From assembly GCA_964270895.1 (NCBI GenBank), contig OZ185441.1: DNA of 64,000 nt. One strand, 5' to 3'. Made by a program: the position numbers and the translations under genes. The DNA is from Podarcis filfolensis (lineage: Eukaryota). Below the pieces are notes generated by a model. The model ran no database searches. It was not told the DNA's origin and worked only from the letters and a program-made list of their open reading frames with translations. Below are positions 39,023-64,000 of this stretch, piece by piece. Each line of letters starts with the position of its first letter. Positions within the stretch are counted from its first letter, which is position 1.

Positions 39023-39380
39023 AGCGGGACGCGGGTGGCAGTGTGAGTTAAACCACGGACCCTTGGACTTGCCGATCAGAAGGTCGGCGGTTCGAATCCC
39101 CGCAACAGGGTGAGCTTCTGTTGCTCGGTCCCTGCTCCTGCCAACCTAGCAGTTTGAAAACATGTCAAAGTGCAAGTAGATAAATAGGTACTGCTCCGGT
39201 GGGAAGGTAAACGGCGTTTCCGTGCGCTGCTCTGGTTCGTCAGAAGCAGCTTAGTCATGCTGACCACATGACCCGGAAGCTGTACGCCGGCTCCCTCGGC
39301 CAGTGAAACAAGATGAGCGCCGCAACCCCAGAGTCGGTCACTACTGGACCTAATGTTTAGGGGTCCCTTTACCTTTACCT
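39023..39380 (+). mobile_element. Full-length Sauria SINE (lacertid-type)
   Basis: 5' GGGACGCGGGTGGC, B-box GGTTCGAATCCC, 3' GGGGTCCCTTTACCTTTACCT tail; 14-bp TSD TACTCTAAGTATGA (39009-39022, 39381-39394); empty sites at 45492 and 57009. Confidence 0.93.
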
Positions 39381-40715: not shown

Positions 40716-40757
40716 TGCAGTTCTCTGCTTCAGACTCACAGTGTCACTGTTGGACAA
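40716..40757 (+). promoter_or_regulatory. CSE / CTCF site of V8 (CACT core)
   Basis: tgcagttctctgcttcagactcacagtgtcactgttggacaa; core 40745-40748. Confidence 0.85.
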
Positions 40758-40993
40758 GGCGGCAATCGAAGGGCAGCTGAAGTTCCACTGATGCTTTCTG
40801 CAGAGAGATCTCTTTGTCCCAAACTGCACTTCGGGAATACCAGCAGACGCTGGAACAAACGTTTCAGCTGGAAAAAAGAAAACACTGCAGCATATACAAA
40901 TTAAACCAAAGGATCCAGTTCTTTTTTTACTGGGGAAAATCTCCTGTTTTCGTGGAAATCTGAAATCCTGTGCTCATCAAAGAGAAGAGGAAA

Positions 40994-43423
40994 ATGAAGG
41001 TGAGAGGAATCCTTCATGGAGAGAGCTTTCAAACACCAGGAAGGCATATAACACTTCTGATATTTTCATCTTTGTTCTGTAGAGCAGTTTTGGAAGAGGT
41101 TCACTATTCCATCCCTGAGGAGATGGCAAGGGGGTCTTTGGTGGGAAATCTTGCCAAGGATCTGGGACTGAATGCCAGAGAACTGAAGAGCAGAAACCTG
41201 CATATCATTTCTGAAGGTAAAAAGCCATATTTCACTATCAATGCTGAAAATGGAAACCTGTATGTGAATGAGAGGATTGATCGTGAGGGAATGTGTAGAG
41301 AGAGCACACACTGCATTATTGATTTTGAAGCTGTGGTGGAAAAGCCATTGAATGTTTTCCATGTAAGTGTAGCAATTCAGGACATTAATGATAATGCCCC
41401 ACAATTCTTAGAAGCCAATATTAGACTGGAAATAATTGAGTCCACATTGCCAGGTGCTAGATTTCTCCTTGGGAAAGCTGAAGATCCTGATATTGGGATT
41501 AATTCTCTTCAAAACTACCAGTTAAACATAAATCAGTTCTTTGTATTAGAAATTAAACACAGTCTAGATGGCCATAAAAATGCAGAGTTGGTCCTGCAAA
41601 AACCTTTGGATCGGGAAAGTGAGCACTCGCTTCAGTTGATCCTTACAGCTCTTGATGGAGGTGAACCCAAAAAAACTGGGACTGCCCAGATATGGATTAA
41701 CATCACAGATGCCAATGACAACCCACCAGTCTTCACTCAAGAGGTTTATACAGTTAGCCTGAGGGAAAATTCCCCTGTGGGGTCCCCAATACTCCAAGTA
41801 AAAGCCTCTGATAGGGATGAAGGTTCAAATAGTCAGATCCATTACACATTCAGTAAAGTCCCAGAAAAAGTCTATGAAAAATTTAGACTAGATCCACAAA
41901 GTGGAACAATTACAATTAAGGAGACCCTTGACTTTGAGGAAACAGAGAAGTACACTATGGCAGTTGAAGCAAGAGATGGAGGTGGATTAGTGGCTCACTG
42001 TAATGTTGATATAAAGATTATAGATGAGAATGATAATGCTCCAGAAATTATTCTAGCCTCCTTATCTTCTCCAATTCCCGAAGATTTTGTTTCTGGAACA
42101 GTAATAGCTCTCATCAACGTAAAGGATAGGGATTCAAGAGAAAATGGAAAGATCACCTGCCACTTACAAAGTAATGTACCATTTAAAATAGTGTCAACAT
42201 CTAAGAACTACTACAAAATCCTTACAGACAGTCCTTTGGACAGAGAAAAAGCCTCAGGATACAACATCACAATCACGGCCACCGACAAAGGTAGCCCCCC
42301 TCTCTCCTCCAACAAAACTATCTCCCTGCAGATTTCAGATATCAATGACAACCCCCCTGCCTTTGAAAAATCAACTTACAGTGTCTTTGTGCCTGAAAAC
42401 AATCCCTCAGGTGCCTCCATTTTTGCCCTCAAAGCCTCGGACCTGGATCTGGACCACAACTCACGTATCACTTACTCCATCCTCAACAGCAACATGGAGG
42501 AGCTGCCTCTCTCCTCTTATGTCTCCATCAACTCTGAGACGGGAACTATCTATGCACAGCGCTCCTTTGACTATGAGCAATTCAGGGAGTTTCAGATCCA
42601 AGTGAAGGCCCAAGATGGCGGCTCTCCCTCTCTCAGCAACAACACCACCGTGTGGGTGTACATTTTGGATCAGAACGATAACAACCCTCGCATTCTGTAT
42701 CCTGTCCCGGGTGCTGAGGGCTCTGCCTTGTTTGAGATGGTTCCTCATTCAGCAGAGCCAGGCTACCTAGTGACCAAAGTGGTGGCTGTGGACGCGGACT
42801 CTGGGCACAATGCCTGGCTCTCCTACCAAGTGCTTCAGGCCACAGAGCCGGCCCTCTTCACCATTGGGACCCACACGGGAGAGATCAGGACGTCACGAGC
42901 CCTTCTGGAGAAAGATGCTGTGAAACAGAAGCTGGTCATCTTGGTGAAGGACAATGGGAAGGCTCCGCTCTCAGCTACTGTGGTCCTCAACCTCGTGGTT
43001 GCTGAGAACTTCCAAGAGGCACTTCCAGAAATGACTAGGCAATCCAGTGACACAGAGCATCATTCTGACCTCCAGTTTTACTTGGTGCTGGCTTTGGCAT
43101 TGATCTCATTTTTATTCCTCCTGACGGTGATACTGGTCATTGTCATGAAACTTCGACAATCAGGAAATCCCAAATTATTCCAATGCTTTGAACCTAATGC
43201 TTTTTCTAAGGCACAGGTCATATTTCCACCAAACTATGAAGAAGGAACTTTACCTTATTCCTACCAACTCTGCCTATCGTCAGAGATGGGGAAAGAGCAG
43301 ATCTCTTTCCCGAAATCCCATATCCAGGTGGCAGAAAACTTGCTATGCAATGATAGCTCTCAGGTGGTTCTTGTGGATGGCAACTGTGGAGATGCCAATG
43401 CCAAAGAGGAGGTTGGTGAGCAG
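40994..43423 (+). CDS. PCDHGB: Protocadherin gamma-B-like variable exon V8 (810 codons)
   Basis: First ATG at 40994 (the ORF track begins at GTG 40970). Full domain set. Donor CAG|GTAAGC at 43423/43424, phase 0. Confidence 0.95.
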
Positions 43424-43944
43424 GTAAGCTTTGCTTTCAGAAACAGCCTTACCTTATAGCAATAAAACTAATATTTTTATTTTGTTTTACTATATAAGGG
43501 GCCAGGAAAATTAAATTACAGTGTTAACAGCAGTTGTTCTGATTGTGAAGAACTTTCCCTACACATAGAAATGCTAGATGCAGCATAAATTCTGAGGCAT
43601 ACAATAATGTCAGAGTGAGTCTTCATCTCTGGAATTAAAGGAAATGTAGGCATGCATACAGCTTGAGTGTTCAATCTTCCTGTGGGGTATTATCCCTTAT
43701 CAATTAAAAATAAGGATTTGTACTTTTTCACTCACACAAAGCACAGTTTATTTGTCCTGTTATGATCAACTTAACTGAAGAATGCATAAAACATGAATGC
43801 TTCCTATTTATTTGTTGTATAATTTTGGGCGGTGTGTGGCTTCTCTGGAGGATTCATAAAAAGAAGTTGTGTGAAATACAGCAACCACAGAAAAAGGCAT
43901 CCCAAATGATCCATGGGTGCAACAACTTCTGTAGGGATACTTAG

Positions 43945-45075
43945 TTTAGATAAAATACAAGAAGGGAAGTGAGACAGCTGTATAGAATTATGAACGAGGT
44001 TGAGAAAATGAATAGAGAGATCCCCCTGCCCCATATTACTGGAGCCTGTGGCCATTGGGTGAAGCTGAATATTGGGAGATTCAGAACAGATAAAAGGAAA
44101 ACCTTCTTCATACAATACATAGTTAAACTATGGAATTCCTTGTTGACAACTAATTGCAACAACAGATCAGTGAAAATGGATATGGCAGCAAACAATTAGT
44201 GTGACTCTTAAGGAACACTTGTATAAGTTTGTTTTTTGATGGTACATGATACTTCTGGGCTTCGTCACATTTATAGAACAGGAAATAAATATGTTGGAAG
44301 TACAATTCAACCAATGCTAGGGTGCAATATATTTGGGAGACATGTCCCTAAATTAAGAATTTGTGGGTGGACATGATAAGGGAAATTGAAAGAATAAGAG
44401 GATACACTTTGCCAATGGATCCTTCCATTTTCTTATATGATTACTTTAAGGATTTAGAACAACAGAAGACAGATAATTACTCCAACAGTTACTGTCTGTG
44501 GCCAGAGCAACTTTTTTTATAACTGAGGGCAGGGGCTAAGAACACCAGCTTTAGGGGAATGGATTACTACAGCATGGAATATTTTATCAATGGTTCAACT
44601 AATTAATACAGTAAGAATCAGAGAGGGGAGGCAGTCTGATAACTTTCTGTGTGTTTTTTCATAATTTATTGGTGCAATGAAGTTCAAGATAATGCAGACC
44701 CACATATTTTATTTGGACCTTTATGAAGGCCATATGCTTTATTTGAGCTCATAATAGGAATTTAATGATAATTGTATACCCAGCCATTTGGTTTTTATAT
44801 AAACCATTATTAAATAATTTACTTATTTAAACAAACAAACAATGGAAATCACTACCACAAGATGCAATGATGGTCACCTACTTGGGTGGTTTTAAAGGGG
44901 GGTTAGAAAAAAATCATTGTCATGTTGGCTATATTATGTCTAGTAGCAGACACCTCTGACTGTGGACCAAGGGCAGAGCTTTTGAGAGGCATCTGGTTGG
45001 CCACAGTGGGAGAAAGGATGTTGGACTCAATAGAGCTCTGGCCTGATCCAGCAGGGCTTTTCTTATGTTTTTATG
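43945..45075 (+). mobile_element. CR1 3' fragment, split by a nested L1-like insertion (44143-44840)
   Basis: CR1 ORF2 end (KLNIGRFRTDKRKTFFIQ.IVKLWNSL) resumes at 44841 and ends in ggcctgatccagcagggcttttcttatgtttttatg. Confidence 0.82.
44143..44840 (+). mobile_element. L1-clade LINE 3' fragment with (AAAC)n tail
   Basis: Remnants resembling the L1 ORF2 C-terminus (CWKY...IWETCP.IKNLW, GYTLPMDP, PALGEWITTAWNILSM); flanked by a degenerate duplication atggaattcct / atggaaatcac. Confidence 0.65.
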
Positions 45076-46826
45076 AAATAGAATTGTGTGCAATGTTTCT
45101 GTGTGATAGACTAGCAGATGAAAATAGGATTCCTCGCAAGCAAAGGGGAAAGTTGACAGCTATGCCAAGGCACCGTTCTGCCACAGGCCTCATTGTTTGT
45201 ATAATCTATAAAGTCATCCAAGACTGCATAAAAGTTATGATATTTCCCCTGGCCTCTTGCTGTCTTCAATTTCCATGTCAGTTTTTTCAATAATGCTACC
45301 TGCCAGATTGCACTGCCTGCGTCATGTATGTCTGCCTCATGATTTAGACAATAATAATGATAGTTACCGTGTATATAATATTTATATGTTTCAAAGGGCA
45401 TTGCATATAATGGGTCAGATTCAGAATTAGTTATCCTTGGACCAAGTTAGTCAAGCAAGACTAATTTAAGTCAATTTTATTTAAGTCGGGCTACTTTAAG
45501 TATGATGAAGTCTGGATTTGACACATTATCTTATAATTCTTATATAAGTGAGTTCCTGTCAGAGGCAAAATTAATACCATGGAATTCCTGGTTCACAGTT
45601 TTGTTCTTTACATGAGACCAGCTCAATATACATGAAGCATGTTGAATTCTTGAACTGCTCTACCAACATGTTAGCTATGCTGCTTACATGACATGAATGC
45701 ATGAATCGATGGATAACTGTATTTCTGATCATAGCATTGTGGGATATCTTAGCAGGTACTTGAGTCATTTAAGCCTGCAATGAACCACCCCCTCCAACTC
45801 CCTGCTGGGCTCATGGCCAGTAGGGCAGATGTGAGGATGGAGGAGTGTTCTTGCCAGGGTTGGTGCTAGCTGTTGGAAGGAATTAGGGGACAGGACCATG
45901 ACTGACAATTGCAGTGTGCTCAGCTACCACGTAAACATAGAAAAAGAAGTTTTAAAATGGAGGGGAAAGCTCAGAACATTTGAGGTTCAGCATATAACAC
46001 CCAGGGCTTATTTATGTAGTTTTGTTCCTTGATTAAATGAAGTTGCATTAACAGCTGGAGACAATATGCAGCTTCCTAAAATACTGAAAGGACCATAGTG
46101 ATTTCTGAGTAGCTTTCTGGTTGTCCTGTCCCACCCCCACTCCCCGCCGGCAAAATAGGGGTCTCCATATTGTTTGCATATGTAGAGGGGATGACCCATA
46201 TCTGTGATATTGTGAAGTAACTGGGGTGTTGTGTAAGGTAAAAAGCACACAACACAAAGTAAATGAAATCAGCAAAGTGTCTATCGTAACTGGACAAAAG
46301 GGCAGGTGGGGGAAATGGCAAAGGTAAATACTGACACAGTACATCTGTTGAAGGAGAAAGCTACACAAACAGACCAGAAATCGTGTGGGCATAAGGTGAC
46401 AAAATAGGACTTGAGATGTGGCACTATTTTCAGTGAAATTATGTAAGGATAAACACAATTTTCAGATACATCCTTAGGCTTTCCACACACAGTCTAAGAA
46501 GCCTGTAAATACCTAATACAATATTTTTCTAATTTATTTAAAAGTCTTTTATTATAAACAACAATATCATTCCCATACTGCAGTCTGCTATTCTGATTTT
46601 TTCTAAAGAAATAGTGGAAATAGTGCTATAAATTCATTACTGCTTTTTCTTTGCTGCAAATATTAATTTGAAGCTGATTCCTTTTAACCTATTGTAATGG
46701 TGAACAGATAACACTTTCCAACAGGCATATTCAGAAAACCTGTATGAGAATATGGTCTGAGTCATTACTTAAAATTACTACTATGTAATGTCATGAATTA
46801 GGGAAGAAAAATCACTGGGAAAAGAT

Positions 46827-46868
46827 TGCAGTTCTCTGCTTCAGACTCACAGTGTCACTGTTGGACAA
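46827..46868 (+). promoter_or_regulatory. CSE / CTCF site of V9 (CACT core)
   Basis: tgcagttctctgcttcagactcacagtgtcactgttggacaa; core 46856-46859; identical to the V8 element. Confidence 0.85.
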
Positions 46869-47110
46869 GGCGGCAATCCAAGGGCAGCTGAAGTTCCACT
46901 GATGCTTTCTGCAGAGAGATCTCTTTGTCCCAAACTGCACATCGGGAAAACCAGCAGACGCTGCAACAAACGTTTCAGCTGGAAAACAAGAAAACACTGC
47001 AGCATATACAAATTAAGCCAAAGGATCCAGTTCTTTTTTTACTGGCCAAAAAAATATCTCCTGTCTTGGTGGAAATCTGAAATCCTGTGCTCATCAAAGA
47101 GAAGAGGAAA

Positions 47111-49540
47111 ATGAAGAGAAGAGGAATCCTTCATGGAGAGAGCTTTCAAACATCAGGAAGGCATATTACCCTTCTGATATTTTCATCTTTGTTCTGTGGA
47201 GCAGTTTTGGAAGAGGTTCACTATTCCATCCCTGAGGAGATGGCAAAGGGATCTTTGGTGGGAAATCTTGCCAAGGATCTAGGATTGAATGCCAGAGACC
47301 TGAAGAACAGAAACCTGCATATCCTTTCTGAAGGTAAAAAGCCATATTTCACTATCAATGCTGAAAATGGAAACCTATATGTGAATGAGAGGATAGATCG
47401 TGAGAGGATGTGTAGAGAGAGCACACACTGCATTATTGATTTTGAAGCTGTGGTCGAAAATCCATTGAATGTTTTCCATGTAACTCTAGCAATCCAAGAC
47501 ATTAATGATAATGCCCCACAATTCTTAGAAGCCAATATTAGACTTGAAATAATTGAATCCACATTGCTAGGTGCCAGATTTCATATTGGGAAAGCTGAAG
47601 ATCCTGATATTGGGATTAATTCTCTCCAAAATTATCAGTTAAGCCTAAATCAGTTCTTTATATTAGAAATTAAGCATAATCTGGATGGCCATAAATCTGC
47701 AGAATTGGTGCTGCAGAAACCTTTGGATCGGGAAAGCGAACACTCCCTTCAGTTGATCCTTACGGCCCTTGATGGAGGTGAACCCAGAAAAACTGGGACT
47801 GCCCAGATATGGATTAACATCACAGATGCCAATGACAACCCACCAGTTTTCACTCAAGAAGTTTATACAGTTAGCCTGAGGGAAAATTCCCCTGCGGGGT
47901 CCCCCATACTCCAAGTAAAAGCCTCTGATAGGGATGAAGGTTCAAATAGTCAGATCAGTTACACATTCAGTAAAGTCCCAGAAAAAGTCTATGAGAAATT
48001 TAGTCTAGATCCACAAAGTGGAATAATTATAATTAAGAAAGCTCTTGATTTTGAGGAAACAGAGAAATACACTATGACAGTTGAAGCAAAAGATGGAGGA
48101 GGTTTAGTGGCTCACTGTAATGTTGAAATAAAGATTCTAGATGAGAATGACAATGCTCCAGAGATCATCGTGGCCTCCTTATCCACCCCAGTATCAGAAA
48201 ACTCTGTTTCTGGAACAATAATTGCTCTCATCAATGTAAAGGATAGGGATTCTGGAGAAAATGGAAGAATTACATGCCATCTACAAAGTAATGTACCATT
48301 TAAAATAGCATCAATATCTAAGAACAACTACAAAATCCTTACAGACAGTCCTTTGGACAGAGAAAAAGCCTCAGGATACAACATCACAATCACGGCCACT
48401 GACAAAGGTAGCCCCCCTCTCTCCTCCAACAAAACCATCTCCCTGCAGATTTCAGACATCAATGACAACCCCCCTGCCTTTGAAAAATCAACCTACAGTG
48501 TCTTTGTACCAGAAAACAATCCCTCAGGTGCCTCCATTTTCTCCATCAAAGCCTTGGACCCAGATCTGGACCGCAACTCACGTATCACTTACTCCATCCT
48601 CAACAGCAACATGGAGGAGCTGCCTCTCTCCTCTTACGTCTCCATCAACTCTGAGACGGGAACTATCTATGCACAGCGCTCCTTTGACTATGAGCAATTC
48701 AGGGAGTTTCAGATCCAAGTGAAGGCCCAAGATGGCGGCTCTCCCTCTCTCAGCAACAACGCCACCGTGTGGGTGTACATTTTGGACCAGAATGATAACA
48801 GCCCCCGCGTTCTGTATCCTGTCCCGGGTGTTGAGGGCTCTGGTTTGTTTGAGATGGTTCCTCACTCGGCAGAGCCAGGCTACCTAGTGACCAAAGTGGT
48901 GGCTGTGGACGCGGACTCTGGGCACAATGCCTGGCTCTCCTACCAAGTGCTGCAGGCCACGGAGCCGGCCCTCTTCACCATTGGGACCCACACAGGAGAG
49001 ATCAGGACGTCACGAGCCCTTCTGGAGAAGGATGCTGTGAAACAGAAGCTGGTGATCTTGGTGAAGGACAATGGGAAGGCTCCGCTCTCAGCTACTGTGG
49101 TCCTCAACCTCGTGGTTGCTGAGAACTTCCAAGAGGCACTTCCAGAAATGACTAGGCAATCCAGTGACACAGAGCATCATTCAGACCTCCAGTTTTACTT
49201 GGTGCTGGCTTTGGCATTGATCTCATTTTTATTCCTCCTGACGGTGATACTGGTCATTGTCATGAAACTTCGACAATCAGGAAATCCCAAATTATTCCAA
49301 TGCTTTGAACCTAATGCTTTTTCTAAGGCGCAGGTCATATTTCCACCAAACTATGAAGAAGGAACTTTACCTTATTCCTACCAACTCTGCCTATCGTCAG
49401 AGATGAGGAAAGAGCAGATCTCTTTCCCGAAATCCCATATCCAGGTGGCAGAAAACTTGCTATGCAATGATAGCTCTCAGGTGGTTCTTGTGGATGGCAA
49501 CTGTGGGGATGCCAGTGCCAAAGAGGAGGTTGGTGAGCAG
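47111..49540 (+). CDS. PCDHGB: Protocadherin gamma-B-like variable exon V9 (810 codons)
   Basis: ATG at 47111. Full domain set. Donor CAG|GTAAGC at 49540/49541, phase 0. Confidence 0.95.
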
Positions 49541-50099
49541 GTAAGCTTTGCTTTCAGAAACAGCCTTACCTTATAGGAATACAACTCATATTTTTATTTC
49601 ATTTTACTATATAAAGGGGTCAGGAAAATGAAATTACAGTGTTAGCAACCGTTGTCCTGATTGTGAAGAACTTTCCCTACACATAGCTTTTAAGTTGCAA
49701 TGCTAGACGCAGCATAAATTCTGAGGTGTGCAATAATGGCAGAGTGAGTCTTCATCTCTGGAATTAAAGGAAATGTAAGCATGCATGCACGGAGTGTTCA
49801 ATCTTCCTGTGGGGTATTAGCGTGTCACCATAAATATATAGTTATTTATACATCCCTCATCAATTAAAAATAAGGATTTGTACTTTTTCACTCACACAAA
49901 GCACAGTTTATTTGTCCTGTTATGATCAACTTAACTGAAGAAAGCATAAAACATGAATGCTTCCTATTTATTTGTAGTATAATTTTGGGCTGTGTGTGGC
50001 TTCTCTGGAGGATTCATAAAAAGTTGTGTGAAATAACAGCAAGCACAGAAAAAGGCATCCCAAATGATTAATGGGTGCAACAACTTCTGTAGGGAAATT

Positions 50100-51183
50100 T
50101 AGTTTAGATAAAATACAAGAATGGAAGTGAGACAGCTGTATCGAATTATGAATGATGTTGAGAAAATGAATAGAAAGATCCCCCTCCCCCATATTACTGG
50201 AGCCTGTGGCCATTGGGTGAAGCTGAACATTGGGAGATTTAGAACAGATAAAAGGAAGACCTTCTTCATACAATGCATAGTTAAACTATGGAATTCCCTG
50301 TTCACAACTAATTGCAACAACAGATCAGTGAAACAATTAGTGTGACTCTTAAGGAACACTTGTATAAGTTTGTTTCTTCATGGTACATGACACTTCTGTG
50401 GCTTCGTCACATTTATCAAACAGGAAATAAATGTGTTGGAAGTACAATTCAACCAATGCTAGGATGCAATATACTTGGGAGGCATGTCCCTAAATTAAGA
50501 ATTTGTGGGCGGACACGATAAGGGAAATTGAAAGAATAAGAGGATACACTTTGCCATTGGATCCTTCCATTGTCTTATATGATTACTTTAAGGATTTAGA
50601 ACAACAGAAGACAGAGAATTACTCCAACAGTTACTGTCTGTGGCCAGAGCAACTATTTGGGGGCAGGGCTAAGAACACTAACTTTAGGGGAATGGATTAC
50701 TACAGCATGGAATATTTTATCAATGGTTCAACTAATTAATACAGTAAGAATCAGAGAGGGGAGGCAGTCTGATAACTTTCTGCGTTTATTTTCATAATTT
50801 ATTGGTACAATGAAGTTCAAGATAATGCAGACCCACATACTTTATTTGGATCTTTGTGAAGGCTATATACTTTATTTGAGTTCATAATAGGAATTTAATT
50901 ATAATTGTATACCCAATACAAATAATTTACCTATTTAAACAAACAAACAATGTAAATCACTATCACAAGATTCAGTGATGGTCACCTACTTGGGTGGTTT
51001 TAAAGGGGGATTAGAAAAAAATCATTGTCATGTTGGCTATATTACGTCCAGTAGCAGACACCTCTGACTGTGGACCAAGGGCAGAGCTTTTGAGGGGCAT
51101 CTGGTTGGCCACAGTGGGAGAAAGGATGCTGGACTCAGTAGAGCTCTGGCCTGATCCAGCAGGGCACTTCTTACGTTTTTATG
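50100..51183 (+). mobile_element. Second copy of the CR1 fragment with nested L1-like insert (50301-50948)
   Basis: Paralogous to 43945-45075. Confidence 0.8.
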
Positions 51184-51489
51184 AATAGAATTGTGTGCAG
51201 TGTTTCTGTGTGATAGACTAGCAGATGAAAAACTAGAAGCATGTTGAAAATTAGGCAGCACTCTGGTTGTGATCACTTGGAAATGTCAATTCCGTTCAGT
51301 GGGGTTCCAGTTTCAAGGGGATATATGGCAGGCAAAAATATTTTCTAAAAAAAAAATATTTTCTAAAATTATTTTCTAATAAGACCTCTATCATATACTC
51401 TTTCAATTAGACACAACTGATTTCTTCTAACACCTCTTGTCTCTCCACTGTTCTCGGTTCCCAAACTTCATGATGCTATTATCATAATA

Positions 51490-51831: not shown

Positions 51832-51903
51832 TATCATAATATGAAATCATGTGTAAAGTGCCAACAAACATTTTATCCTGTTGGATCATGCCTAGCTTGC
51901 GTC

Positions 51904-52070
51904 AAGGTGTTCCGTTGTGCCAAAAGCGGTATAGTCATGCTGGCCACATGACCCGGAAAGCTGTCTGTGGACAAATGCCGGCTCCCTCAGCCTGAAAGAG
52001 AGATGAGCGCTGCCACCCCATAGTCGTCTTTGACTGAACTTAACTATCCAGGGCTCCTTTACCCTTTTTT
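51904..52070 (+). mobile_element. 5'-truncated Sauria SINE (older subtype)
   Basis: agtcatgctggccacatgacccggaaagctg...gagatgagcgctgccacccc...cctttacc, homologous to the 3' half of 39023-39380. Confidence 0.85.
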
Positions 52071-52809
52071 ACTGCTGGTAGAGCAACTACAGCCATTGGT
52101 CCTGCACTTGTGCTGTGTTCCTGCTTTGATCACAGGGAACAACTGCTAAGCAAGGACATTTGTGTGGCACCAGCAGGTAGGAGGCAGGTGGCAGAGTCTG
52201 ATGTAGAACCAATACCAGCGAACACACTTTTATCACCTAGTGCAGTCTAGACAGAAGCTACATGTGTTGCATCTTATCTTACCCTCAACAGACAGAGAGA
52301 GAACTCTTGGAATAGTAAGTTACTCTTGGAATTCCTACCCAACATTGAAAAGAACTTGTGCTCTGTTCCATAAATGTTGATAGACATCCAACAACATAGA
52401 AGAGATAAAAAAGAGAATAATTTCAGTAGGTTGTTTATATTAATTCTATTTAAGAAAAAAATACAATAGACTTACAGCTCTTGTGCTACTACAGCATAAC
52501 TATTATCGTAATACATTAATTTTAAGAAAATGTTTTAATATGTAACTGGATATTTATATATTAATGTTTACATATTTCCAATAAAAAAGAAGATGTGAAT
52601 AACCTTAATGTAATTGCAGTATTAGATACGACCCCAATTTTCACAGTACTGAAGAGCCACGGACATAAATGAGGTTAGCTGTACACTAAGAAAGAACACC
52701 AAGGAAAAGCCTTCTCAAATGCTCCACTCAGTGAGCAGAAAGGAAGGTATAGTATGTGCTGGAGAAATATCTGCATTTATTCACCTCTGTCTATTTTCAT
52801 AGAACAAAA

Positions 52810-52851
52810 TGCAGTTCCTTGAGTGGTCCTCTAAGTGTCAGTGTTGGCCAG
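52810..52851 (+). promoter_or_regulatory. CSE / CTCF site of V10 (divergent CAGT core)
   Basis: tgcagttccttgagtggtcctctaagtgtcagtgttggccag; core 52839-52842; the most degenerate of the ten. Confidence 0.75.
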
Positions 52852-53122
52852 TATGAGAGCCAGAGAGAGGATAGAGATCCAGTGATGCTTCCTGGACTGC
52901 AGTAACTCCCATCACTGTTGTTCAGATCAGACCAACTGAAGAGCACAGAGACAGGGAACTCTTGCAGAGAAGGAAAAATCTCTTTTGCTTTGCACACATA
53001 TGAGAACAAGGACAGTTTATTCTTCTTCAGTGATACCTCATGTTGTTTCCTTCATCACTGTGAGAGCTTGAGCATAGGAAACTGAGAAAAGGAAGCAGCC
53101 TGTTTTTGAGAGAACCAGCCAG

Positions 53123-55543
53123 ATGGAGAGAAGGCACCCAGGGAATGGCAGGGCGCTCACAAGGCAAGTACTGCTTCTCTCTCTATTGTCTTTTACCTGT
53201 TGGGCTGCATCAGAGCAGATTCATTATTCAACCCCTGAGGAGATGGCAAAGGGTTCCGTTGTGGGGAACCTCGCCAAGGACCTGGGACTGAGCACCAAAG
53301 AACTAAAACATCGCAATCTGCACACTGTGTCTGTGGCTAAAATGCAGCATTTCAGTATCAATGCAGAGAATGGAAACCTCTATGTAAATGACAGGATTGA
53401 TAGGGAGGGGATATGTGGCAAAAATCCAAATTGCTTTGTTAATTTTGAAGTTGTGGTGGAAAACCCTTTGAATATTTTTCATGTACTAGTGGAAATACAG
53501 GATGTTAATGATAATGCACCCCAATTCCTCAATGATAATATCAGCTTGCAGACAGGTGAGCAAACTTTGCCAGGCACTCGATTTCTCCTTGGGAAAGCAG
53601 AAGATCCTGACATTGGGATGAACTCTCTCCAGGATTACCAGCTGAGCTCCAATCAGTACTTCAGTTTGGAAATTAGAGAGAGAAAGGATGGAAATAAATA
53701 TGCAGAACTGGTGCTACAGAACCCTCTTGATCGAGAACGTGAACAAACCCTTCACTTGGTTCTTACCGCTATGGATGGGGGTGAGCCTAGGAAAACTGGG
53801 ACGGCCCAGATACAGATTAATGTCACAGATGCCAATGACAACCCACCTGTTTTCAGTCAAGAGGTATACAAGGTCAGTTTATCTGAAAATGTTCCTGTTG
53901 GGTCACTTGTGCTCCAGGTTGCAGCCTCTGATAAAGATGAAGGTTTATATGCCCAAATCGGGTATCATTTTAGCAACATACCAGCAACTGCCGAACTGAA
54001 ATTCAAGCTGGATCCCATCAGCGGCCAAATCACACTACTGGAGCAACTGGATTTTGAGGACAATGATGAATATACGATGACAGTTGCTGCAAAAGATGGA
54101 GGTGGGTTGATGACACATTCTAACATTGAGCTAAGGGTTCATGATGAGAATGATAATGCCCCGGATGTGACCTTAGCCTCCATGTTCAGCCCTGTTCCTG
54201 AAGATTCTCTGCCAGGGACAGTTATTGCTCTGATCAATGTAAATGACAGAGATAGTGGAGATAATGGGAAGGTCACTTGCTATTTACAGGATGATTTACC
54301 CTTCAAAATTCTTCCCTCATCTAACAATTACTTCAAGCTCCAGACAGACAGTCTCCTGGACAGAGAAATAGCTCCTGCATATAATATTACAATCACAGCC
54401 ACTGATAAAGGAACTCCACCTCTTTCCACACACAAAACAATCTCACTACAGATCTCAGATATCAATGATAATGCCCCTGCTTTTCAGAGATCAACCTACA
54501 GCATCTATGTGCCAGAAAACAATCCTTCAGGTGCCTCCATTTTCACCATCAAAGCCTCTGATTCCGATGTGGACCAGAACTCACGGATCACATACTCCAT
54601 CCTCAACAGCAACATTGAGGAGCTTCCCATCTCCTCCTATATCTCCATTAATTCAGAGACTGGCACCATCTATGCCCAGAGATCCTTTGACTATGAACAA
54701 TTCAGAGAGTTCCGGCTGCAAGTGAAGGCCCAAGATGGGGGTTCTCCCCCTCTCAGCAGCAATGTGAGCGTCAGGGTGTTTGTTCTTGACAGGAATGATA
54801 ACAGCCCTCGTATCCTGTCCCCCTCACAAGAAGCCAAGGGCTCAGCCTTGTTTGAGATGGTGCCTCGTTCGGCAGAGGCAGATTATCTTGTCACCAAGGT
54901 GGTGGCCGTGGATGCAGATTCTGGACACAACGCCTGGCTCTCCTACCACCTGACTCAGGCCACTGAGCCGGCACTCTTCACGGTTGGTTCTCATACTGGA
55001 GAGATCAGGACAGCCAGGGCCTTTGTGGAGAGAGACGCTGTGAAACAGAGACTGGTCATTATGGTGAAGGATAACGGGCAGCCGTCTCTCTCGGCCACCA
55101 TGACTCTGAACCTGGTGTTTGCTGAGAACTTTCAGGAGGCCCTTCCAGAAATGAAGAGCCAACCCAGCAGCTCGGAGTATCAGTCTGACCTGCAGTTCTA
55201 CTTGGTGCTGGCCTTAGCTGTGATCTCCTTCTTGTTCCTCTTGACTGTGATTCTGGCCGTTACAATGAAGCTCCGTCAGTCAGGGCATCCCAGGTTCCTA
55301 CAGTGCTTTGGTCCTGTTCCCCATTCCAAGAATGGTGCCATCTTCCCACCCAACTTTGAAGATGGGACTTTGCCCTATTCCTACCAGCTGTGCCTGTCTT
55401 CTGAGTCCAGGAAGAATGAGTTTACCTTCCTGACACCAAATATACAGATTGCAGAGAATATTCTTAGCAGTGAGAAACCTGCTGTGCCTTTTACAGGCAA
55501 TGTAGGAAACAATTTTGATTCTGCAGTAGATAATGGAGAACAG
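53123..55543 (+). CDS. PCDHGB: Protocadherin gamma-B-like variable exon V10 (807 codons; own EC1-EC3, V7-type EC4 to donor)
   Basis: Full domain set. Donor CAG|GTAAGG at 55543/55544, phase 0. Confidence 0.95.
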
Positions 55544-58341
55544 GTAAGGTTTGTTTTCTGAAATTAAATGCCATTATCCATCATTCTTTGCCATTAGTGA
55601 CATTGTCACAGTGCTTTTTATCCAGCTAATGTGACTGCCTTTTTGTTTTTCATCATATAAATGAATAGTTTGGCTCTTACATCATTTGGCTTTCATGAAT
55701 CAGGATGCGTCCTTTTCACTCCATGGGGAAGCTACACATCCATACGGAAGCTTCGAGCCATGCCCTTGAAACCATCTGGTAGAACTTATCTTGTTGTCAT
55801 TTGAACAACTAGTATTTTGAGGAGTTGACCTTCAACTACTTTCATTAACTTAAATAAAGTGAGGGAAAGAACTTTGTTTTTCACATTACTTGGCTTTCGG
55901 GGGCAGCAATTTTGGCTTTAGAATCAAAGGAGGGCACCTTGCTGTATAGCAGAAAATACTATCACTGTTATTAGTATTACTAGCAAAAAATTTTAAGCAA
56001 TAGATTTTAAAGACATACACTTTTGAGAGGTTTCTGTAAATTATGCTTTATTTCCTTCTCCATTTTACATTGCCTGTAAAATTAATAGGCATGTGTGTTC
56101 TTGCATGAGTGATGTAAAAAAACGTCAAGTCAAGACTGACTGATTGACTGGCCTTCTAGAGTAGATTGTGGATATTTCCAGCCCCCATATTCCTTTAAGT
56201 GAAACCACATTGCATTAAAGCTCTTTATAAACAACTGTCTGAAAGGCGGACAGATAATGTGGGATATTTTGTTAAAGACATGCATCGTGCATTTATTTAT
56301 TTTTAAAATTTATTTAAAACAAAAATGAAACAACTACATACAGCCAGAGAGTTATCTTCAAATACTCCACAGAGCTTTGCTAAAGTGTATATTCTAAAAT
56401 CATTTCAATCTTAACAAAAGCAAAATGGTACGTAATAACCTCCATCTCTTTGACTGTTGTCCACAACTACAAACATATATTGTATCAGCAGCAGTGCTGG
56501 TCTGCAGGAATTATACAAAGGCAAGGAGGAAGGAGGAAAAATAAAATAAAATATGTGCTTCATGCACACCAAACTGTCCTAGGCCAAGGCACATAGCTGT
56601 CAACGTTTCCCTTTTTTCAAGAGAAATTCCCTTATTCCAAATAGGATTCCTCGCAAGCAAAGGGGAAAGTTGACAGCTATGCCAAGGCACCGTTCTGCCA
56701 CAGGCCTCATTGTTTGTATAATCTATAAAGTCATCCAAGACTGCATAAAAGTTATCATATTTCCCCTGGCCTCTTGCTGTCTTCAATTTCCATGTCAGTT
56801 TTTTCAATAATGCTACCTGCCAGATTGCACTGCCTGCGTCATGTATGTCTGCCTCATGATTTAGACAATAATAATGATAGTTACCGTGTATATAATATTT
56901 ATATGTTTCAAAGGGCATTGCATATAATGGGTCAGATTCAGAATTAGTTATCCTTGGACCAAGTTAGTCAAGCAAGACTAATTTAAGTCAATTTTATTTA
57001 AGTCGGGCTACTTTAAGTATGATGAAGTCTGGATTTGACACATTATCTTATAATTCTTATATAAGTGAGTTCCTGTCAGAGGCAAAATTCATACCATGAA
57101 ATTCCTGGTTCACAGTTTTGTTCTTTACATGAGACCAGCTCAATATACATGAAGCATGTTGAATTCTTGAACTGCTCTACCAACATGTTAGCTATGCTGC
57201 TTACATGACATGAATGCATGAATCGATGGATAACTGTATTTCTGATCATAGTATTGTGGGATATCTTAGCACGTACTTGAGTTACGTAAGCATGCAATGA
57301 ACCACCCCCTCCAACTCCCTGCTGGGCTCATGGCCAGTAGGGCAGATGTGAGGATGGAGGAGTGTTCTTGCCAGGGTTGGTGCTAGCTGTTGGAAGGAAT
57401 TAGGGGACAGGACCATGACTGACAATTGCAGTGTGCTCAGCTACCACGTAAACATAGAAAAAGAAGTTTAAAAATGGAGGGGAAAGCTCAGAACATTTGA
57501 GGTCCAGCATATAACACCCAGGGCTTATTTATGTAGTTTTGTTCCTTGATTAAATGAAGTTGCATTAATAGCTGGAGACAATATGTAGCTTCCTAAAATA
57601 CTGAAAGGACTGTAGAGATTTCTGAGTAGCTTTCTGGTTGTCCTGTCCCACCCCAACTCCCCGCCGGCAAAATAGGGGTCTCCATATTGTTTGCATATGT
57701 AGAGGGGATGACCCATATCTGTGATATTGTGAAGTAGCTGGGGTGTTGTGTAAGGTCAAAAGCACACACCACAAAGTAAATGAAATCAGCAAAGTGTCTA
57801 TTGTAACTGGACAAAAGGGCAGGTGGGGGAAATGGCAAAGGTAAATAATGACAAAGTACATCTGTTGAAGGAGAAAGCTATACAAACAGACCAGAAATCG
57901 TGTGGGCATAAGGTGACAGAATAGGACTTGAGATGTGGCACTATTTTCAGTGAAATTATGTAAGGATAAACACAATTTTCAGACACGTCCTTAGGCTTCC
58001 CACACACAGTTTAAGATGCCTGTAAATACCTAATACAATATTTTTCTAATTTATTTAAAAGTCTTTTATTATAAACAACAATATCATTCCCATACTGCAG
58101 TCTGCTATTCTGATTTTTTCTAAAGAAATAGTGGAAATAGTGCTATAAATTCATCACTGCTTTTTCTTTGCTGTAAATATTAATTTGAAGCTGATTCCTT
58201 TTAACCTATTGTAATGGTGAACAGATAACACTTTCCAACAGGCATATTCAAATAACCTGTATGAGAATATGGTCTGAGTCATTACTTAAAAATGACTATG
58301 TAATGTAATGAATTAGGGAAGAAAAATCACTGGGAAAAGAT

Positions 58342-58383
58342 TGCAGTTCTCGGCTTCAGACTCACAGTGTCACTGTTGGACAA
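58342..58383 (+). promoter_or_regulatory. CSE / CTCF site of V11 (CACT core)
   Basis: tgcagttctcggcttcagactcacagtgtcactgttggacaa; core 58371-58374. Confidence 0.85.
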
Positions 58384-58621
58384 GGCGGCAATCCAAGGGC
58401 AGCTGAAGTTCCACTGATGCTTTCTGCAGAGAGATCTCTTTGTCCCAAACTGCACATCGGGAAAACCAGCAGACGCTGCAAATACGTTTCAGCTGGAAAA
58501 CAAGAAAACACTGCAGCATATACAAATTAAGCCAAAGGATCCAGTTCTTTGTTTACTGGGGGGAAACCCTCCTGTCTTGGTGGAAATCTGAAATACTGTG
58601 CTCATCAAAGAGAAGAGGAAA

Positions 58622-61051
58622 ATGAAGAGAAGAGGAATCCTTCATGGAGAGAGCTTTCAAACATCAGGAAGGCATATTACCCTTCTGATATTTTCATCTT
58701 TGTTCTGTGGAGCAGTTTTGGAAGAGGTTCACTATTCCATCCCTGAGGAGATGACAAAGGGGTCTTTGGTGGGAAATCTTGCCAAGGATCTGGGACTGAA
58801 TGCCAGAGACCTGAAGAGCAGAAACCTGCATATCCTTTCTGAAGGTAAAAAGCCATATTTCACTATCAATGCTGAAAATGGAAACCTATATGTGAATGAG
58901 AGGATAGATCGTGAGGGGATGTGTAGAGAGAGCACACATTGCATTATTGATTTTGAAGCGATGGTTGAAAAGCCATTGAATGTTTTCCATGTAAGTTTAG
59001 CAATTCAGGACATTAATGATAATGCCCCACAATTCCTAGAATCCAATATTAGACTAGATATAATTGAATCCACATTGCCGGGTGCCAGATTTCATATTGG
59101 GAAAGCTGAAGATCCTGATATTGGGATTAATTCTCTCCAGAATTATCAGTTAAGCCTAAATCAGTTCTTTATATTAGAAATTAAGCATAGTCTGGACGGC
59201 CATAAATATGCAGAATTGGTGCTGCAGAAACCTTTGGATCGGGAAAGTGAGCACTCACTTCAGTTGATCCTTACGGCCCTGGATGCGGGTGAACCCAGAA
59301 AAACTGGGACTGCCCAGATATGGATTAACATCACAGATGCCAATGACAACCCACCAGTTTTCACTCAAGAAGTTTATACAGTTAGCCTGAGGGAAAATTC
59401 CCCTCTGGGGTCCTCCATACTCCAAGTAAAAGCCTCTGATAGGGATGAAGGTTCAAATAGTCAGATCAGTTACACATTCAGTAAAGTCCCAGAAAAAGTC
59501 TATGAGAAATTTAGACTAGATCCACAAAGTGGAACAATTACAATTAAGGAGACCCTTGACTTTGAGGAAACAGAGAAGTACACTATGACAGTTGAAGCAA
59601 GAGATGGAGGAGGATTAGTGGCTCACTGTAATGTTGATATCAAGATTATAGATGAGAATGACAATGCTCCAGAGATCATCGTGGCCTCCTTATCTAGTCC
59701 AGTTCCTGAAGACTCTGCTTCTGGAACACTAATTGCTCTCATCAACGTAAAGGATAAAGATTCTGGAGAAAATGGAAAAATTACATGCCATCTACAAGGT
59801 AATGTACCATTTCAAATAGTGTCAACTTCAAAGAACTACTATAAAATCCTCACCGACAGTCCTTTGGACAGAGAAAAAGCCTCAGGATACAACATCACAA
59901 TCACGGCCACCGACAAAGGTAGCCCCCCTCTCTCCTCCAACAAAACTATCTCCCTGCAGATTTCAGATATCAATGACAACCCCCCTGCCTTTGAAAAATC
60001 AACCTACAGTGTCTTTGTTCCTGAAAACAATCCCTCAGGTGCCTCCATTTTTGCCCTCAAAGCCTCGGACCCAGATCTGGACCGCAACTCACGTATCACT
60101 TATTCCATCCTCAACAGCAACATGGAGGAGCTGCCTCTCTCCTCTTACGTCTCCATCAACTCTGAGACGGGAACTATCTATGCACAGCGCTCCTTTGACT
60201 ATGAGCAATTCAGGGAGTTTCAGATCCAAGTGAAGGCCCAAGATGGCGGCTCTCCCTCTCTCAGCAACAACGCCACCGTGTGGGTGTACATTTTGGATCA
60301 GAACGATAACAGCCCTCGCATTCTGTATCCTGTCCCGGGTGTTGAGGGCTCTGCTTTGTTTGAGATGGTTCCTCACTCGGCAGAGCCAGGCTACCTAGTG
60401 ACCAAAGTGGTGGCTGTGGACGCGGACTCTGGGCACAATGCCTGGCTCTCCTACCAAGTGCTGCAGGCCACAGAGCCGGCCCTCTTCACCATTGGGACCC
60501 ACACGGGAGAGATCAGGACATCAAGAGCCCTTCTGGAGAAAGATGCTGTGAAACAGAAGCTGGTCATCTTGGTGAAGGACAATGGGAAGGCTCCGCTCTC
60601 AGCTACTGTGGTCCTCAACCTCGTGGTTGCCGAGAACTTCCAAGAGGCACTTCCAGAAATGACTAGGCAATCCAGTGACACAGAGCATCATTCTGACCTC
60701 CAGTTTTACTTGGTGCTGGCTTTGGCATTGATCTCATTTTTATTCCTCCTGACGGTGATACTGGTCATTGTCATGAAACTTCGACAATCAGGAAATCCCA
60801 AATTATTCCACTGCTTTGAACCTAATGCTTTTTCTAAGGCACAGGTTATATTTCCACCAAACTATGAAGAAGGAACTTTACCTTATTCCTACCAACTCTG
60901 TCTATCGTCAGAGATGAGGAAAGAGCAGATCTCTTTCCCGAAATCCCATATCCAGGTGGCAGAAAACTTGCTATGCAATGATAGCTCTCAGGTGGTTCTT
61001 GTGGATGGCAACTGTGGGGATGCCAGTGCCAAAGAGGAGGTTGGTGAGCAG
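58622..61051 (+). CDS. PCDHGB: Protocadherin gamma-B-like variable exon V11 (810 codons)
   Basis: ATG at 58622. Full domain set. Donor CAG|GTAAGC at 61051/61052, phase 0. Confidence 0.95.
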
Positions 61052-61554
61052 GTAAGCTTTGCTTTTAGAATCAGCCTTACCTTATAGGAATAAAACTAAT
61101 ATTTTTATTTTGTTTTACTATATAAGGGGGTCAGGAAAATGAAATTACAGTGTTAGCAGCAATTGTTCTGATTGTGGAGAACTTTCCCTACACATAGAAA
61201 TGCTAGACGCAGTATAAATTCTGAATCATACAATAATGGCAGAGTGAGTCTTCATCTCAGGAATTAAAGGAAATGTAAGCATGCATACAGCTTGAGTGTT
61301 CAATCTTCCTGTGGGGTATTAGCATGTCACCATAAATATATAGTTATTTATACACCCCTCATTAATTAAAAATAAGGATCAACTTAACTGAAGAATGCAT
61401 AAAAAATGAATACTTCCTGTTTATTTGTAGTATAATTTTGGACTCTGTGTGGCTTTTCTGGAGGATTCATAAAAAGAAGTTGTGTGAAATACAGCAAGCA
61501 CAGAAAAGGCATCCCAAATGATCAATGGGTGCAACAACTTCTGTAGGGATATTT

Positions 61555-62822
61555 ATTTTGGATAAAAGACAAGAAGGGAAGTGAGACAGCTGTATAGAAT
61601 TATGAACGAGGTTGAGACAATGAATAGAGAGATCCCCCTCCCCCATATTACTGGAGCCTGCAGCCATCAGATGAATCTGAACATTGGGAGATTCAGAACA
61701 GATAAAAGGAAGTACTTCTTTATACAATGCATAGATAAACTATGGAATTCCTTGTTGACAACTAAATGCAACAAAGTAATTGCCAGAGAAGTCTGGGACA
61801 TCGGATCAGTGAAAATGGATGTGGCAGCAAACAATTAGTGTGAATCTTAAGAAACACTTGTATACGTTTATTTTTTGATGGTACATGACACTGCTGTGGC
61901 TTCGTCACATTTTAGTTGTTGTTGTTTATTTGTTTAGTTGTGTCTGACTCTTCGTGACCCCATGGACAGAGCACGCCAGGCACTCCTGTCTTCCACTGCC
62001 TCTCACAGTTTGGTCAAATTATAGTACAGCAAATAATTACATTGGAAGTACAATTCAACCAATGCTAGGATGCAACATATTTGGGAGGCATGTCCCTAAA
62101 TTAAGAATTTGTGGGTGGATATAATAAGAGAAAATGAAATAATGACAGGATGCACTTTCCCAATGGATCTTCTCATTGGTTTATCTAGTTATTTTAAGGA
62201 TTAAGTATAACAGAAGACAGAGAATTACTCCAACAGTTACTGTCTGTGGCCAAAGCAACTTTTTTTATAACTGAGGGCAGGGGCTAAGAACACCAGCTTT
62301 AGGGGAATGGATTACTACAGCATGGAATATTTTATCAATGGTTCAAATAATTAATACAGTAAGAATCAGAGAGGGGAGGCAGTCTGATAACTTTCAGTGT
62401 GTTTTTCATAATTTTTTGGTGCAATGAAGTTCAAGATAACGCAGACCCACATACTCTATTCAGATCTTTATGAAGGCTATATACTTTATTTGAGTTCATA
62501 ATAAAAATTTAAAGATAATTGTGTACCCAAACATTTGGTTTTTATATAAACCATTATTAAATAATTTACTTATTTAAACAAACAAACAATGGAAATCACT
62601 ATCACAAGATGCAATGATGGTCACCTACTTGGGTGGTTTTAAAGGGGGGTTAGAAAAAAATCATTGTCATGTTGGCTATATTACGTCTAGTAGCAGACAC
62701 CTCTGACTGTGGACCAAGGGCAGAGCTTTTGAGGGGCATCTGGTTGGCCACAGTGGGAGAAAGAATGCTGGACTCAGTAGAGCTCTGGCCTGATCCAGCA
62801 GGGCTCTTCTTATGTTTTTATG
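61555..62822 (+). mobile_element. Third copy of the CR1 fragment with nested L1-like insert (61755-62587)
   Basis: Paralogous to 43945-45075 and 50100-51183. Confidence 0.8.
61914..62018 (-). mobile_element. RTE/BovB-like LINE 3' end fragment, about 105 bp
   Basis: gttgttgttgttt (reverse CAA tail) followed by gtgtctgactcttcgtgaccccatggacagagcacgccaggc, a BovB-like 3' end recognised from memory; absent from the two paralogous copies. Confidence 0.75.
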
Positions 62823-63267
62823 AATAGAATTGTGTGCAGTGTTTCTGTGTGATAGACTAGCAGATGAAAAACTAGAAGCATGTTGAAAATTAGGCAGCAC
62901 TCTGGTTGTGATCACTTGGAAATGTCAATTCCGTTCAGTGGGGTTCCAGTTTCAAGGGGATATACGGCAGGCAAAAATATTTGAATAGCATACACATCTC
63001 CAGATTGGGTTTATGGTCCTCTAGGCTGTTCTGTTCTGAGCTATTACCTTTAATGCGTACAAACTGAAAGTAAATTACTTTAGTTATTTTCTAATAAAAC
63101 CTCTATCATATACTCTTTCAATTAGACACTATTGATTTCTTCTAACACCTCTTGTCTGTCCACTGTTCTCAGTTCCCAAACTTCATGATGCTATTATCAT
63201 AATATGAAATAATGTGTAAAGTATCCAACAAACATTTTATCCTGTTGGATCATGCCTAGCTTCCGTC

Positions 63268-63434
63268 AAGGTGTTCCGTTGTGCCAAAAGCTGTTTAGTC
63301 ATTCTGGCCACATGACCTGGAAAGCTGTCTGTGGACCAATGCTGACTCCCTCGGCCTGAAAGAGAGATGAGCGCCACCACCCCATAGTCGCCTTTGACTG
63401 AACTTAACTATCCAGGGGTCCTTTACCCTTTTTT
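63268..63434 (+). mobile_element. 5'-truncated Sauria SINE, paralog of 51904-52070
   Basis: Same position and truncation point within spacer Y. Confidence 0.85.
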
Positions 63435-64000
63435 ACTGCTGGTAGAGCAGCTACAGCCATTGGTCCTGCACTTGTGCTGTGTTCCTGCTTTGATCACAGG
63501 GAACAACTGCTAAGCAAGGACATTTGTGTGGCACCAGCAGGTAGAAGGCAGGTGGCAGAGTCTGATGTAGAACCAATACCAGCGAACACACTTTTATCAC
63601 CTAGTGCTGTCTAGACAGAAGCTGCAAGTGTTGCATCTTATCTTATCCTCAACAGACAGAGAGAGAACTCTTGGAATAGTAAGTTACTCTTGGAATTCCT
63701 ACCCAACATTGAGAAGAACTTGTGCTCTGTTCCATAAATGTTGATAGACATCCAACAACTTAGGATAGATAAAAAAGGAGAATAATTTCAAGAGGGTGTT
63801 TATATTCTATTTAAGCAACAACAACAAAAATACATTAGACTTACAGCTCTTGTGCTACTATAGCATAACTATTATCGTAATACATTAATTTTAAGATAAA
63901 GTTTTACTCTGTAACTGGATATTTTTATATTAATAATAATGTTTCCATATTTCCAATAAAAAATGAAGATGTGCATAACCTTAATGTAATTGCAGTATTA

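Follow-up and report, generated by a model that had tools for sequence, protein, structure and literature searches.

A gamma-B protocadherin variable exon of probable hybrid origin at the junction of a tandem duplication in Podarcis lizards

The 64,000-nucleotide stretch of Podarcis filfolensis DNA analyzed here (contig OZ185441.1 of assembly GCA_964270895.1), hereafter the window, carries 11 large protocadherin open reading frames (ORFs), V1 to V11, all on the plus strand, and contains no runs of N. Comparison with two other lacertids, Zootoca vivipara and Podarcis lilfordi, indicates that one of these exons, V10 (positions 53123-55543), is a true chimera in which the 5′ part of a downstream exon, here called Z, is joined to the 3′ part of the upstream exon V7. 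Very probably, V10 arose through an unequal exchange between V7 and Z that produced a tandem duplication with a hybrid exon at its junction, and the duplicated units later underwent concerted evolution.

V10 has the one-exon layout of a gamma protocadherin of the B type: it is an 807-codon open frame with five D.ND..P linkers between its extracellular cadherin (EC) repeats, and a splice donor (CAG/GTAAGG) lies directly after position 55543. The domains found by Pfam in V7, V10, and V11, the exons scanned, were in each case Cadherin_2, five Cadherin repeats, and Cadherin_C_2. Those ORFs that could be read to their end terminate at or near a GT donor; the constant exons are located outside the window, and the Cadherin_tail domain is present in lacertid homologs of 941 amino acids (aa). 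The best named relatives are protocadherins annotated as gamma-B1/B4/B5/B6-like from lacertids and other squamates. In protein searches, the best match to EC1-3 of V10 was 87% identical, and neither V10 nor V7 had a match at or near 100% identity.

The comparison of V7 with V10 reveals an abrupt step in identity. As stated in the preliminary description of this DNA, the two exons differ in promoter and EC1-EC3 and are near-identical onward: the promoters are ∼56% identical and effectively unalignable, V10 53123-54141 (EC1-3) is identical to V7 at 811/1019 positions (79.6%), V10 54142-55543 is identical at 1378/1402 (98.3%), and the intron that follows V10 (55544-57022) is 98.6% identical to the intron that follows V7 (37530-39022), with 21 mismatches and 14 gap columns. 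The exon alignment contains no indels, and the V10 junction is in frame in an intact exon. Because the synonymous divergence (dS) between V7 and V10 falls at the same step, from 0.50-0.76 in EC1-3 to 0.04-0.07 from EC4 through the cytoplasmic part, the step is historical rather than the result of protein constraint. A maximum chi-square analysis placed the switch in V10 between 54141 and 54142 (chi-square of 124.7, with 0/2000 permutations as high). The 20-mer GATGAGAATGATAATGCCCC, which occurs in the window at 36129 and 54143 only, encodes DENDNAP at residues 341-347, which is the third of the five linkers, i.e., the EC3/EC4 junction. Two other exons, V2 and V4, share high identity with V7 and V10 inside the exon only (∼54500-55400) and not in the intron. 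The segments of the two exons are as follows.

35109..37529, + strand: V7, the upstream parent exon, of gamma-B type, with six EC repeats, a transmembrane (TM) segment, and a variable cytoplasmic domain; orthologs are present in Zootoca, Lacerta, and P. lilfordi.
52625..53122, + strand: V10 promoter, of Z type; its conserved sequence element (CSE) lies at 52835-52851, with CAGT for CGCT.
53123..54141, + strand: V10 5′ part, signal peptide and EC1-EC3, from the downstream parent Z, as judged from informative sites and a clade with the P. lilfordi exons X and A0.
54142..55543, + strand: V10 3′ part, EC4-EC6, TM segment, and cytoplasmic tail, comprising the homogenized zone; the tail from ∼55406 is unambiguously of V7 type.

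The similarity between the two loci extends well beyond the exon and its intron. Positions 36128-52624 are collinear with 54142-64000, the first copy holding an extra unit (B9) and a short interspersed nuclear element (SINE), and the two direct repeats abut at V10. Past the 360-bp insertion in the first copy, the V7 and V10 copies become collinear again and stay so across the V8 and V11 units, with 91-100% identity in each 200 bp. The two copies of the spacer that follows these units, termed Y (51832-52624 and 63195-64000), are 92.7% identical. It had been claimed that the spacer matches up to position 64000, the equivalent of 52624; the alignment does reach this last base of the window, but the copies are similar rather than identical, with 5 mismatches and 14 gap columns in the last 100 bases. 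The repeated elements, in order along the window, are listed below.

37530..39022, + strand: intron I copy 1, after V7; 98.6% identical to 55544-57022, with orthologous sequence in Zootoca and P. lilfordi.
39023..39381, + strand: tRNA-derived SINE with a target site duplication of ∼13-14 bp (ACTCTAAGTATGA); lineage-specific, and it breaks the collinearity of the V7 and V10 copies.
39382..45124, + strand: B8 unit (V8 exon at 40994-43420 plus flanks).
45122..51343, + strand: B9 unit (V9 exon at 47111-49537), an extra tandem copy.
51832..52624, + strand: spacer Y copy 1, which leads into V10; orthologous to the Zootoca Y upstream of Z.
55544..57022, + strand: intron I copy 2, after V10, of V7 origin.
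57009..62982, + strand: B11 unit (V11 exon at 58622-61048), B unit copy 2 of the duplication.
63195..64000, + strand: spacer Y copy 2, truncated by the end of the window, where it has reached the equivalent of 52624.

The ancestral state of the locus can be read from Zootoca vivipara, in which a 29.3-kb locus, containing a 200-N gap, was reached via the V7 ortholog P0123 (95% identical to V7 in EC2-3). This locus is collinear with the window at 87-93%, noncoding DNA included, and its order is V5 tail, V6, V7, intron I, one B exon, spacer Y, exon Z, intron J, and B′; it thus presents the unduplicated arrangement V7-I-B-Y-Z-J-B′ without a hybrid exon. Intron J, which follows Z, is 2.8 kb long and unrelated to intron I, and B′ is a B-type exon that is B-like from its promoter onward only. 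The spacer, promoter, and EC1-3 of V10 are orthologous to those of Zootoca Z (80-99% identity), whereas the orthologs of the V10 exon tail and intron lie downstream of Zootoca V7 (identity of 0.86-0.98), with no relation to the sequence after Z.

Site patterns and trees lead to the same assignment. Zootoca Z departs from a state shared by both V7 orthologs at 297 diagnostic sites; V10 sides with Z at nearly all of those in 53007-54141 and with V7 at nearly all of those in 54142-55699. In the 5′ part (53123-54141), 163/193 informative sites are Z-like, and short V7-like patches are present within EC2-3 at 53734-53758 and 53822-53849. In trees, the 5′ part of V10 forms a clade with X and A0 (support of 94/99) inside the Z family (100/100), and the 3′ tail, represented by the last 141 nucleotides (nt) of the exon and 100 nt of intron, groups with the V7 types (split support of 100/100). 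Since orthology, diagnostic sites, and trees agree and the Zootoca locus is unduplicated, V10 is a true chimera of a Z 5′ part and a V7 3′ part, and the arrangement in the window is derived relative to that of Zootoca.

The same hybrid is present in a congener. The locus on P. lilfordi chromosome OX395132.1 was analyzed in two stretches of 28 and 50 kb, with 2.2 kb between them unread; single-copy DNA of the window is 96-97.5% identical to that of P. lilfordi. The order in P. lilfordi is V6, V7, I, B, Y, X, I, B, Y, A0, J, B1, A1, J, B2, V6-like, A2, and B3. X, which was located by walking the locus and is annotated as encoding a 772-aa product, is the ortholog of V10 (94.1% identity to window 51832-59442 over 7.6 kb) and likewise combines a Z-type promoter and 5′ half with a V7-type tail and intron I. 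A0, located after the second Y, matches X in spacer, promoter, and EC1 at 97-100% identity and in EC2-3 at 86-97%, but ends in a different tail (NNFHSEMANGEE) and is followed by intron J, as Zootoca Z is. P. lilfordi holds the hybrid X plus a separate Z (A0), i.e., one exon pair above Zootoca, and the structure of upstream parent, hybrid, and downstream parent is complete in this independent assembly. A second V10-like promoter and exon had been predicted to follow the repeated spacer, with near-identical EC1-3. This exon is present in P. lilfordi as A0, the corresponding part of the P. filfolensis genome being past position 64000; the predicted identity holds only approximately, being 98-100% between X and A0 in EC1 and 86-97% in patches of EC2-3.

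Several other features of the P. lilfordi locus were noted. A second Z-type unit, A1-J-B2, is located ∼11.9 kb after A0-J-B1 (OX395132.1, ∼84.68-84.63 Mb); A1 is 97-99% identical to A0 in promoter and EC1 and just 83-90% identical in EC2-4. The intron of A0 carries an insertion of ∼1.4 kb. The suggestion that the window species is distant from Podarcis was rejected: the spacer identity of ∼70% behind it came from the P. lilfordi region from A0 onward, which is beyond the window.

These comparisons can be assembled into a sequence of events. The ancestral order, kept in Zootoca, would have been V7, intron I, B exon, spacer Y, Z, intron J, and B′, V7 and Z being members of a single exon subfamily in which gene conversion keeps the 3′ halves (EC4/5 through TM) near-identical. 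In a common ancestor of P. filfolensis and P. lilfordi that lived after the Zootoca lineage had branched off, misaligned chromatids would have undergone homologous exchange in register, V7 of one with Z of the other through their 3′ halves, giving a tandem duplication of the ∼11.5-kb segment between V7 and Z. The junction exon, V10, would have received the spacer, promoter, signal peptide, and EC1-3 of Z together with the tail, donor, and intron of V7, and a second B unit and a second Y would follow it. Later, the repeat units evolved in concert, and this lineage gained the V8/V9 duplication and the SINE. Unequal homologous exchange is favored because the junction is in register within ∼1.3 kb of ≥95% identity, the paralogs are 11.5 kb apart, and the product is tandem; a homology-guided switch of template during replication would give the same product as a crossover. 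The proposal put forward earlier, that a crossover between homogenized 3′ halves about 11.5 kb apart duplicated a unit and made a hybrid, is upheld by the Zootoca locus, the trees, and P. lilfordi A0.

An intact Z would then be expected just past the window, with a GTGTCAGTGTTGGCC-like CSE at ∼64211-64227 and an ATG at ∼64499. Every ORF in the window is preceded by a conserved promoter element, and the CSE block aligns across all ten promoters of the window. The V10 CSE (52835-52851) lies 211-227 bp past position 52624 and ∼200-300 bp before the ATG, and the earlier estimate of a CSE ∼215 bp past the window end corresponds to the correct equivalent position. The CSE of the V10/Z family reads GTGTCAGTGTTGG, with CAGT where other exons of the window show CGCT or CACT, and this CAGT variant is kept in three lacertids (V10, P. 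lilfordi X and A0, and Zootoca Z).

The crossover had been placed at the EC3/EC4 boundary, an assignment that the P. lilfordi data do not sustain. With Podarcis A0 as a proxy for Z, the switch in V10 moves to between 54166 and 54172, and V10 54172-55400, compared with A0 and V7, contains 12 Z-like and 30 V7-like sites. X is an even mosaic across 54142-55480, and its V7-type identity is unambiguous from 55482 only. In Zootoca, Z and V7 are 90-99% alike from the EC3/EC4 linker onward. Given the mosaic in X and this likeness of Zootoca Z and V7, the linker would represent the 5′ edge of a long-standing homogenized zone and the limit of later conversion between V7 and V10; the crossover itself would have occurred somewhere in the ∼1.3-kb interval 54142-55480.

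The near-identity of V7 and V10 is not a measure of the age of the duplication. The two copies of intron I differ by 1.4%, compared to a single-copy divergence of 2.7% between P. filfolensis and P. lilfordi, and in this intron V7 and V10 resemble each other (98.6%) more than either resembles its P. lilfordi ortholog (∼95%). Quartet site counts group the copies within each species in intron I (27:4:1), the region upstream of the B exon (26-28:1-2:4), and Y (20:6:0). Other paralogs are more divergent than the species are, with 6.3% between Y9 and Y11 and 5.5% between two P. lilfordi B units, and four clustered sites at 56992-57013 are common to V10 and X against both V7 copies. The duplication thus appears to predate the split of the two Podarcis species and not to be recent, and the 98-99% identity of V7 and V10 would reflect later gene conversion. 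On the same site patterns, the 10-kb tandem units, introns included, seem to evolve in concert.

Independent V7 × Z exchanges in this species and in P. lilfordi after their split would also produce copies that group within species across I, B, and Y. A substrate of 1.3 kb at ≥95% identity, 11.5 kb apart, invites repeated exchange, and P. lilfordi has a further pair of like units (A0-J-B1 and A1-J-B2). Nevertheless, such a recurrent origin is unlikely, because some paralog divergences exceed the species divergence and because V10 and X agree at the four sites in 56992-57013; a few ortholog-type sites in the exon also argue against it.

It is less probable still that gene conversion acted alone, so that V10 would be Z itself, its 3′ half and intron overwritten by V7 with no crossover and no added copy. 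Conversion is clearly active in this array, since V2, V4, V7, and V10 are 98-100% alike in EC5-EC6, and both the closeness of V7 and V10 in intron I relative to the P. lilfordi orthologs and the V7-like patches in EC2-3 of V10 are readily explained by it. However, the V7-like run extends for ∼10 kb across an entire B unit and a second Y and takes in DNA that has no homolog downstream of Zootoca Z; this length far exceeds that of a conversion tract, and there is no homology in which a tract could end. P. lilfordi, moreover, holds both X and A0 and therefore one exon pair more than Zootoca. An assembly artefact, by a mis-join via near-identical 3′ halves or a falsely duplicated haplotype, is highly improbable. 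Assembly is difficult in arrays whose exons are 98-99% identical, the junction at 54142 is spanned by no contig from public sequencing runs, and seven letters of V10 are private to the window. Against this, the independent P. lilfordi assembly holds the same hybrid in the same context, which rules out an artefact as its origin; the divergence of the copies, 1.4-6%, is too large for alleles and unlike the identity of a false duplication; and the V10 junction is in frame in an intact exon.

Some observations weigh against unequal exchange between V7 and Z followed by concerted evolution. Z is unseen in this genome, as the window ends 211 bp before its expected CSE, and public-run contigs (Logan; close relatives or conspecifics), which are short, contain further V10-like 5′ sequences (at least 90% identity) that are not assignable to Z. 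The breakpoint is not placeable inside the homogenized 1.3 kb, and the within-species site patterns, which fit concerted evolution, would fit independent duplications too. One Lacerta agilis stretch ends inside the homogenized zone, where the hybrid state is not readable.

The hybrid exon is probably in use, because V10 and X are both intact, with a ratio of nonsynonymous to synonymous divergence (dN/dS) of ∼0.1-0.25. In clustered protocadherins, EC1-4 dimerize in trans and EC5-6 interact in cis. The event therefore seems to have copied a recognition module together with its promoter and joined it to the tail of another exon. The preliminary description saw domain shuffling in this; a hybrid did form, but the shuffling is modest, as the swapped part was near-identical beforehand apart from the cytoplasmic tail and a few EC4 residues. 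The conserved cis-interaction half would have supplied the homology for array growth, and the trans-recognition half, promoter included, was apparently copied whole. At the start, the hybrid and Z, its parent, would have had the same EC1-3; patches of their EC2-3 diverged afterward, and the pair could serve to ask how new homophilic specificity arises.

Hybrid genes produced by unequal crossover include anti-Lepore-type globin duplications, red/green opsin hybrids, and CYP21A2/CYP21A1P chimeras. V10 resembles these classic products of tandem arrays in the in-register exchange and in its structure, a junction gene that combines the 5′ part of the downstream parent with the 3′ part of the upstream parent and, as seen for X in P. 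lilfordi, is flanked by both. It differs in that the junction lies inside one large variable first exon of an alternative-promoter array and in that the V10 type, unlike disease or polymorphic alleles, is fixed and conserved in two or more species.

The surface identity of neurons is conferred by clustered protocadherins, whose exon number varies widely among vertebrates. That these clusters duplicate in tandem by unequal crossover, and that EC4-6 undergo regional conversion, is established (PMC2764143, PMC4978886, PMC4151104); examples of the former include the lineage-specific tandem expansion of the anole gamma-b exons, attributed to unequal crossover (PMC2764143), and duplications and copy number variants (reviewed in PMC4151104). 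The V10 event is a worked example of this known route of array growth and no new mechanism. Expansion is usually inferred from trees that conversion has blurred, and in PMC2764143 and PMC4151104 from trees and copy numbers, whereas here a single event is readable from the junction exon (V10/X), both parents, the unduplicated outgroup state in Zootoca, and the later homogenization. No paper on a hybrid protocadherin variable exon or on a lacertid cluster was found in the literature searched, the coverage of which was incomplete.

Regional conversion in clustered protocadherin exons, as described by Noonan et al. (2004) to the extent that it is cited in PMC2764143 and PMC4978886, homogenizes EC4-6 and leaves EC2-3 diverse, with the lowest dS in EC5/6. 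In the window, 1.5 kb of intron and a large part of a 10-kb unit are homogenized as well, since the flanks of the exon are themselves duplicates. Little conversion was reported for anole gamma-b, with a ratio of high to low dS of 2.25-3.4 for gamma-b and two other anole subgroups (PMC2764143); the corresponding ratio among V2, V4, and V7 is ∼20. Lacertid gamma-B exons show strong regional conversion, unlike that reported for the anole. Across V2, V4, V7, and V10, dS is 0.02-0.06 in EC6, 0.06-0.16 in EC5, and 0.36-1.0 in EC1-3.

We tentatively suggest that the homogenized 3′ halves in lacertid gamma-B arrays may serve as standing substrates for unequal exchange. Growth could then proceed repeatedly by two-exon (A+B, ∼11-12 kb) units, hybrids could re-pair a recognition module with another tail and intron, the 10-kb units could evolve in concert, and patchy conversion in EC2-3 could give new specificity.

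The remaining observations concern individual units and public data. Within the first repeat, V8 and V9 represent a further tandem duplication with a period of 6.1 kb and a junction at ∼45122-45124, which is absent in P. lilfordi and Zootoca; the V8, V9, and V11 units are roughly equidistant (2-5% mismatches). The stub of intron I before V9 (45122-45492) carries the V10-side rather than the V7-side markers at the equivalents of 56992-57013, which implies either that the V9 unit is a copy of the V10/V11 unit or that it was converted by it. The SINE at 39023-39381, inserted in the intron after V7, has a tRNA-like box (GGTTCGAATCC) recognized by eye, although ARAGORN reported no tRNA in it. Its site is empty in P. 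lilfordi, where related copies of 76-91% identity are found elsewhere in the cluster. Because both are absent in P. lilfordi, the extra V8/V9 copy and the SINE are younger than the V10 duplication.

In all four public runs, contig depth, which was not taken as copy number, is very high at 51700-52081 (spacer Y) and 56475-56856 (intron I), marking two interspersed repeats that flank V10. Contigs from the organism labeled A contain a second version across the 5′ half of V10, which partly shows the states of the P. lilfordi A1 paralog. Other joins in contigs of the same organism link V10-like 5′ sequence (53714) with the high-copy repeat (56592), a hint that there is a further V10-like copy that is interrupted. 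The letters of V10 at 52920, 52931, 53012, 53155, 53672, 54022, and 54106 are private to the window, being absent from the four public runs, P. lilfordi X, A0, and A1, and Zootoca Z, and are either substitutions private to the individual or lineage or consensus errors. Two Podarcis muralis gene models in UniProt (P0042 and P0052) join a V10-type EC1 to B-type sequence from EC2 through the cytoplasmic part; these are most likely gene-model artefacts that splice neighboring variable exons, not real hybrids. In another L. agilis stretch (L001, 15129-16243), V6-like exon fragments (at most 91% identical to 31611-32046) between a V10-type exon and a B exon look like a decayed variable exon.

Regional homogenization is strong among V2, V4, V7, and V10 (6000-8420, 16945-19365, 35109-37529, and 53123-55543, respectively). 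The final 2.1 kb of the V1 exon (1-2086, V1 being cut by the window start) is 95.3% identical to that of V3 (11956-14043), and no similarity extends past the exon end. V2/V4 (85%) and V3/V5 (76%) repeat at offsets of ∼11-12 kb, and these repeats, together with V1/V3, suggest older rounds of duplication of the same kind of two-exon unit.

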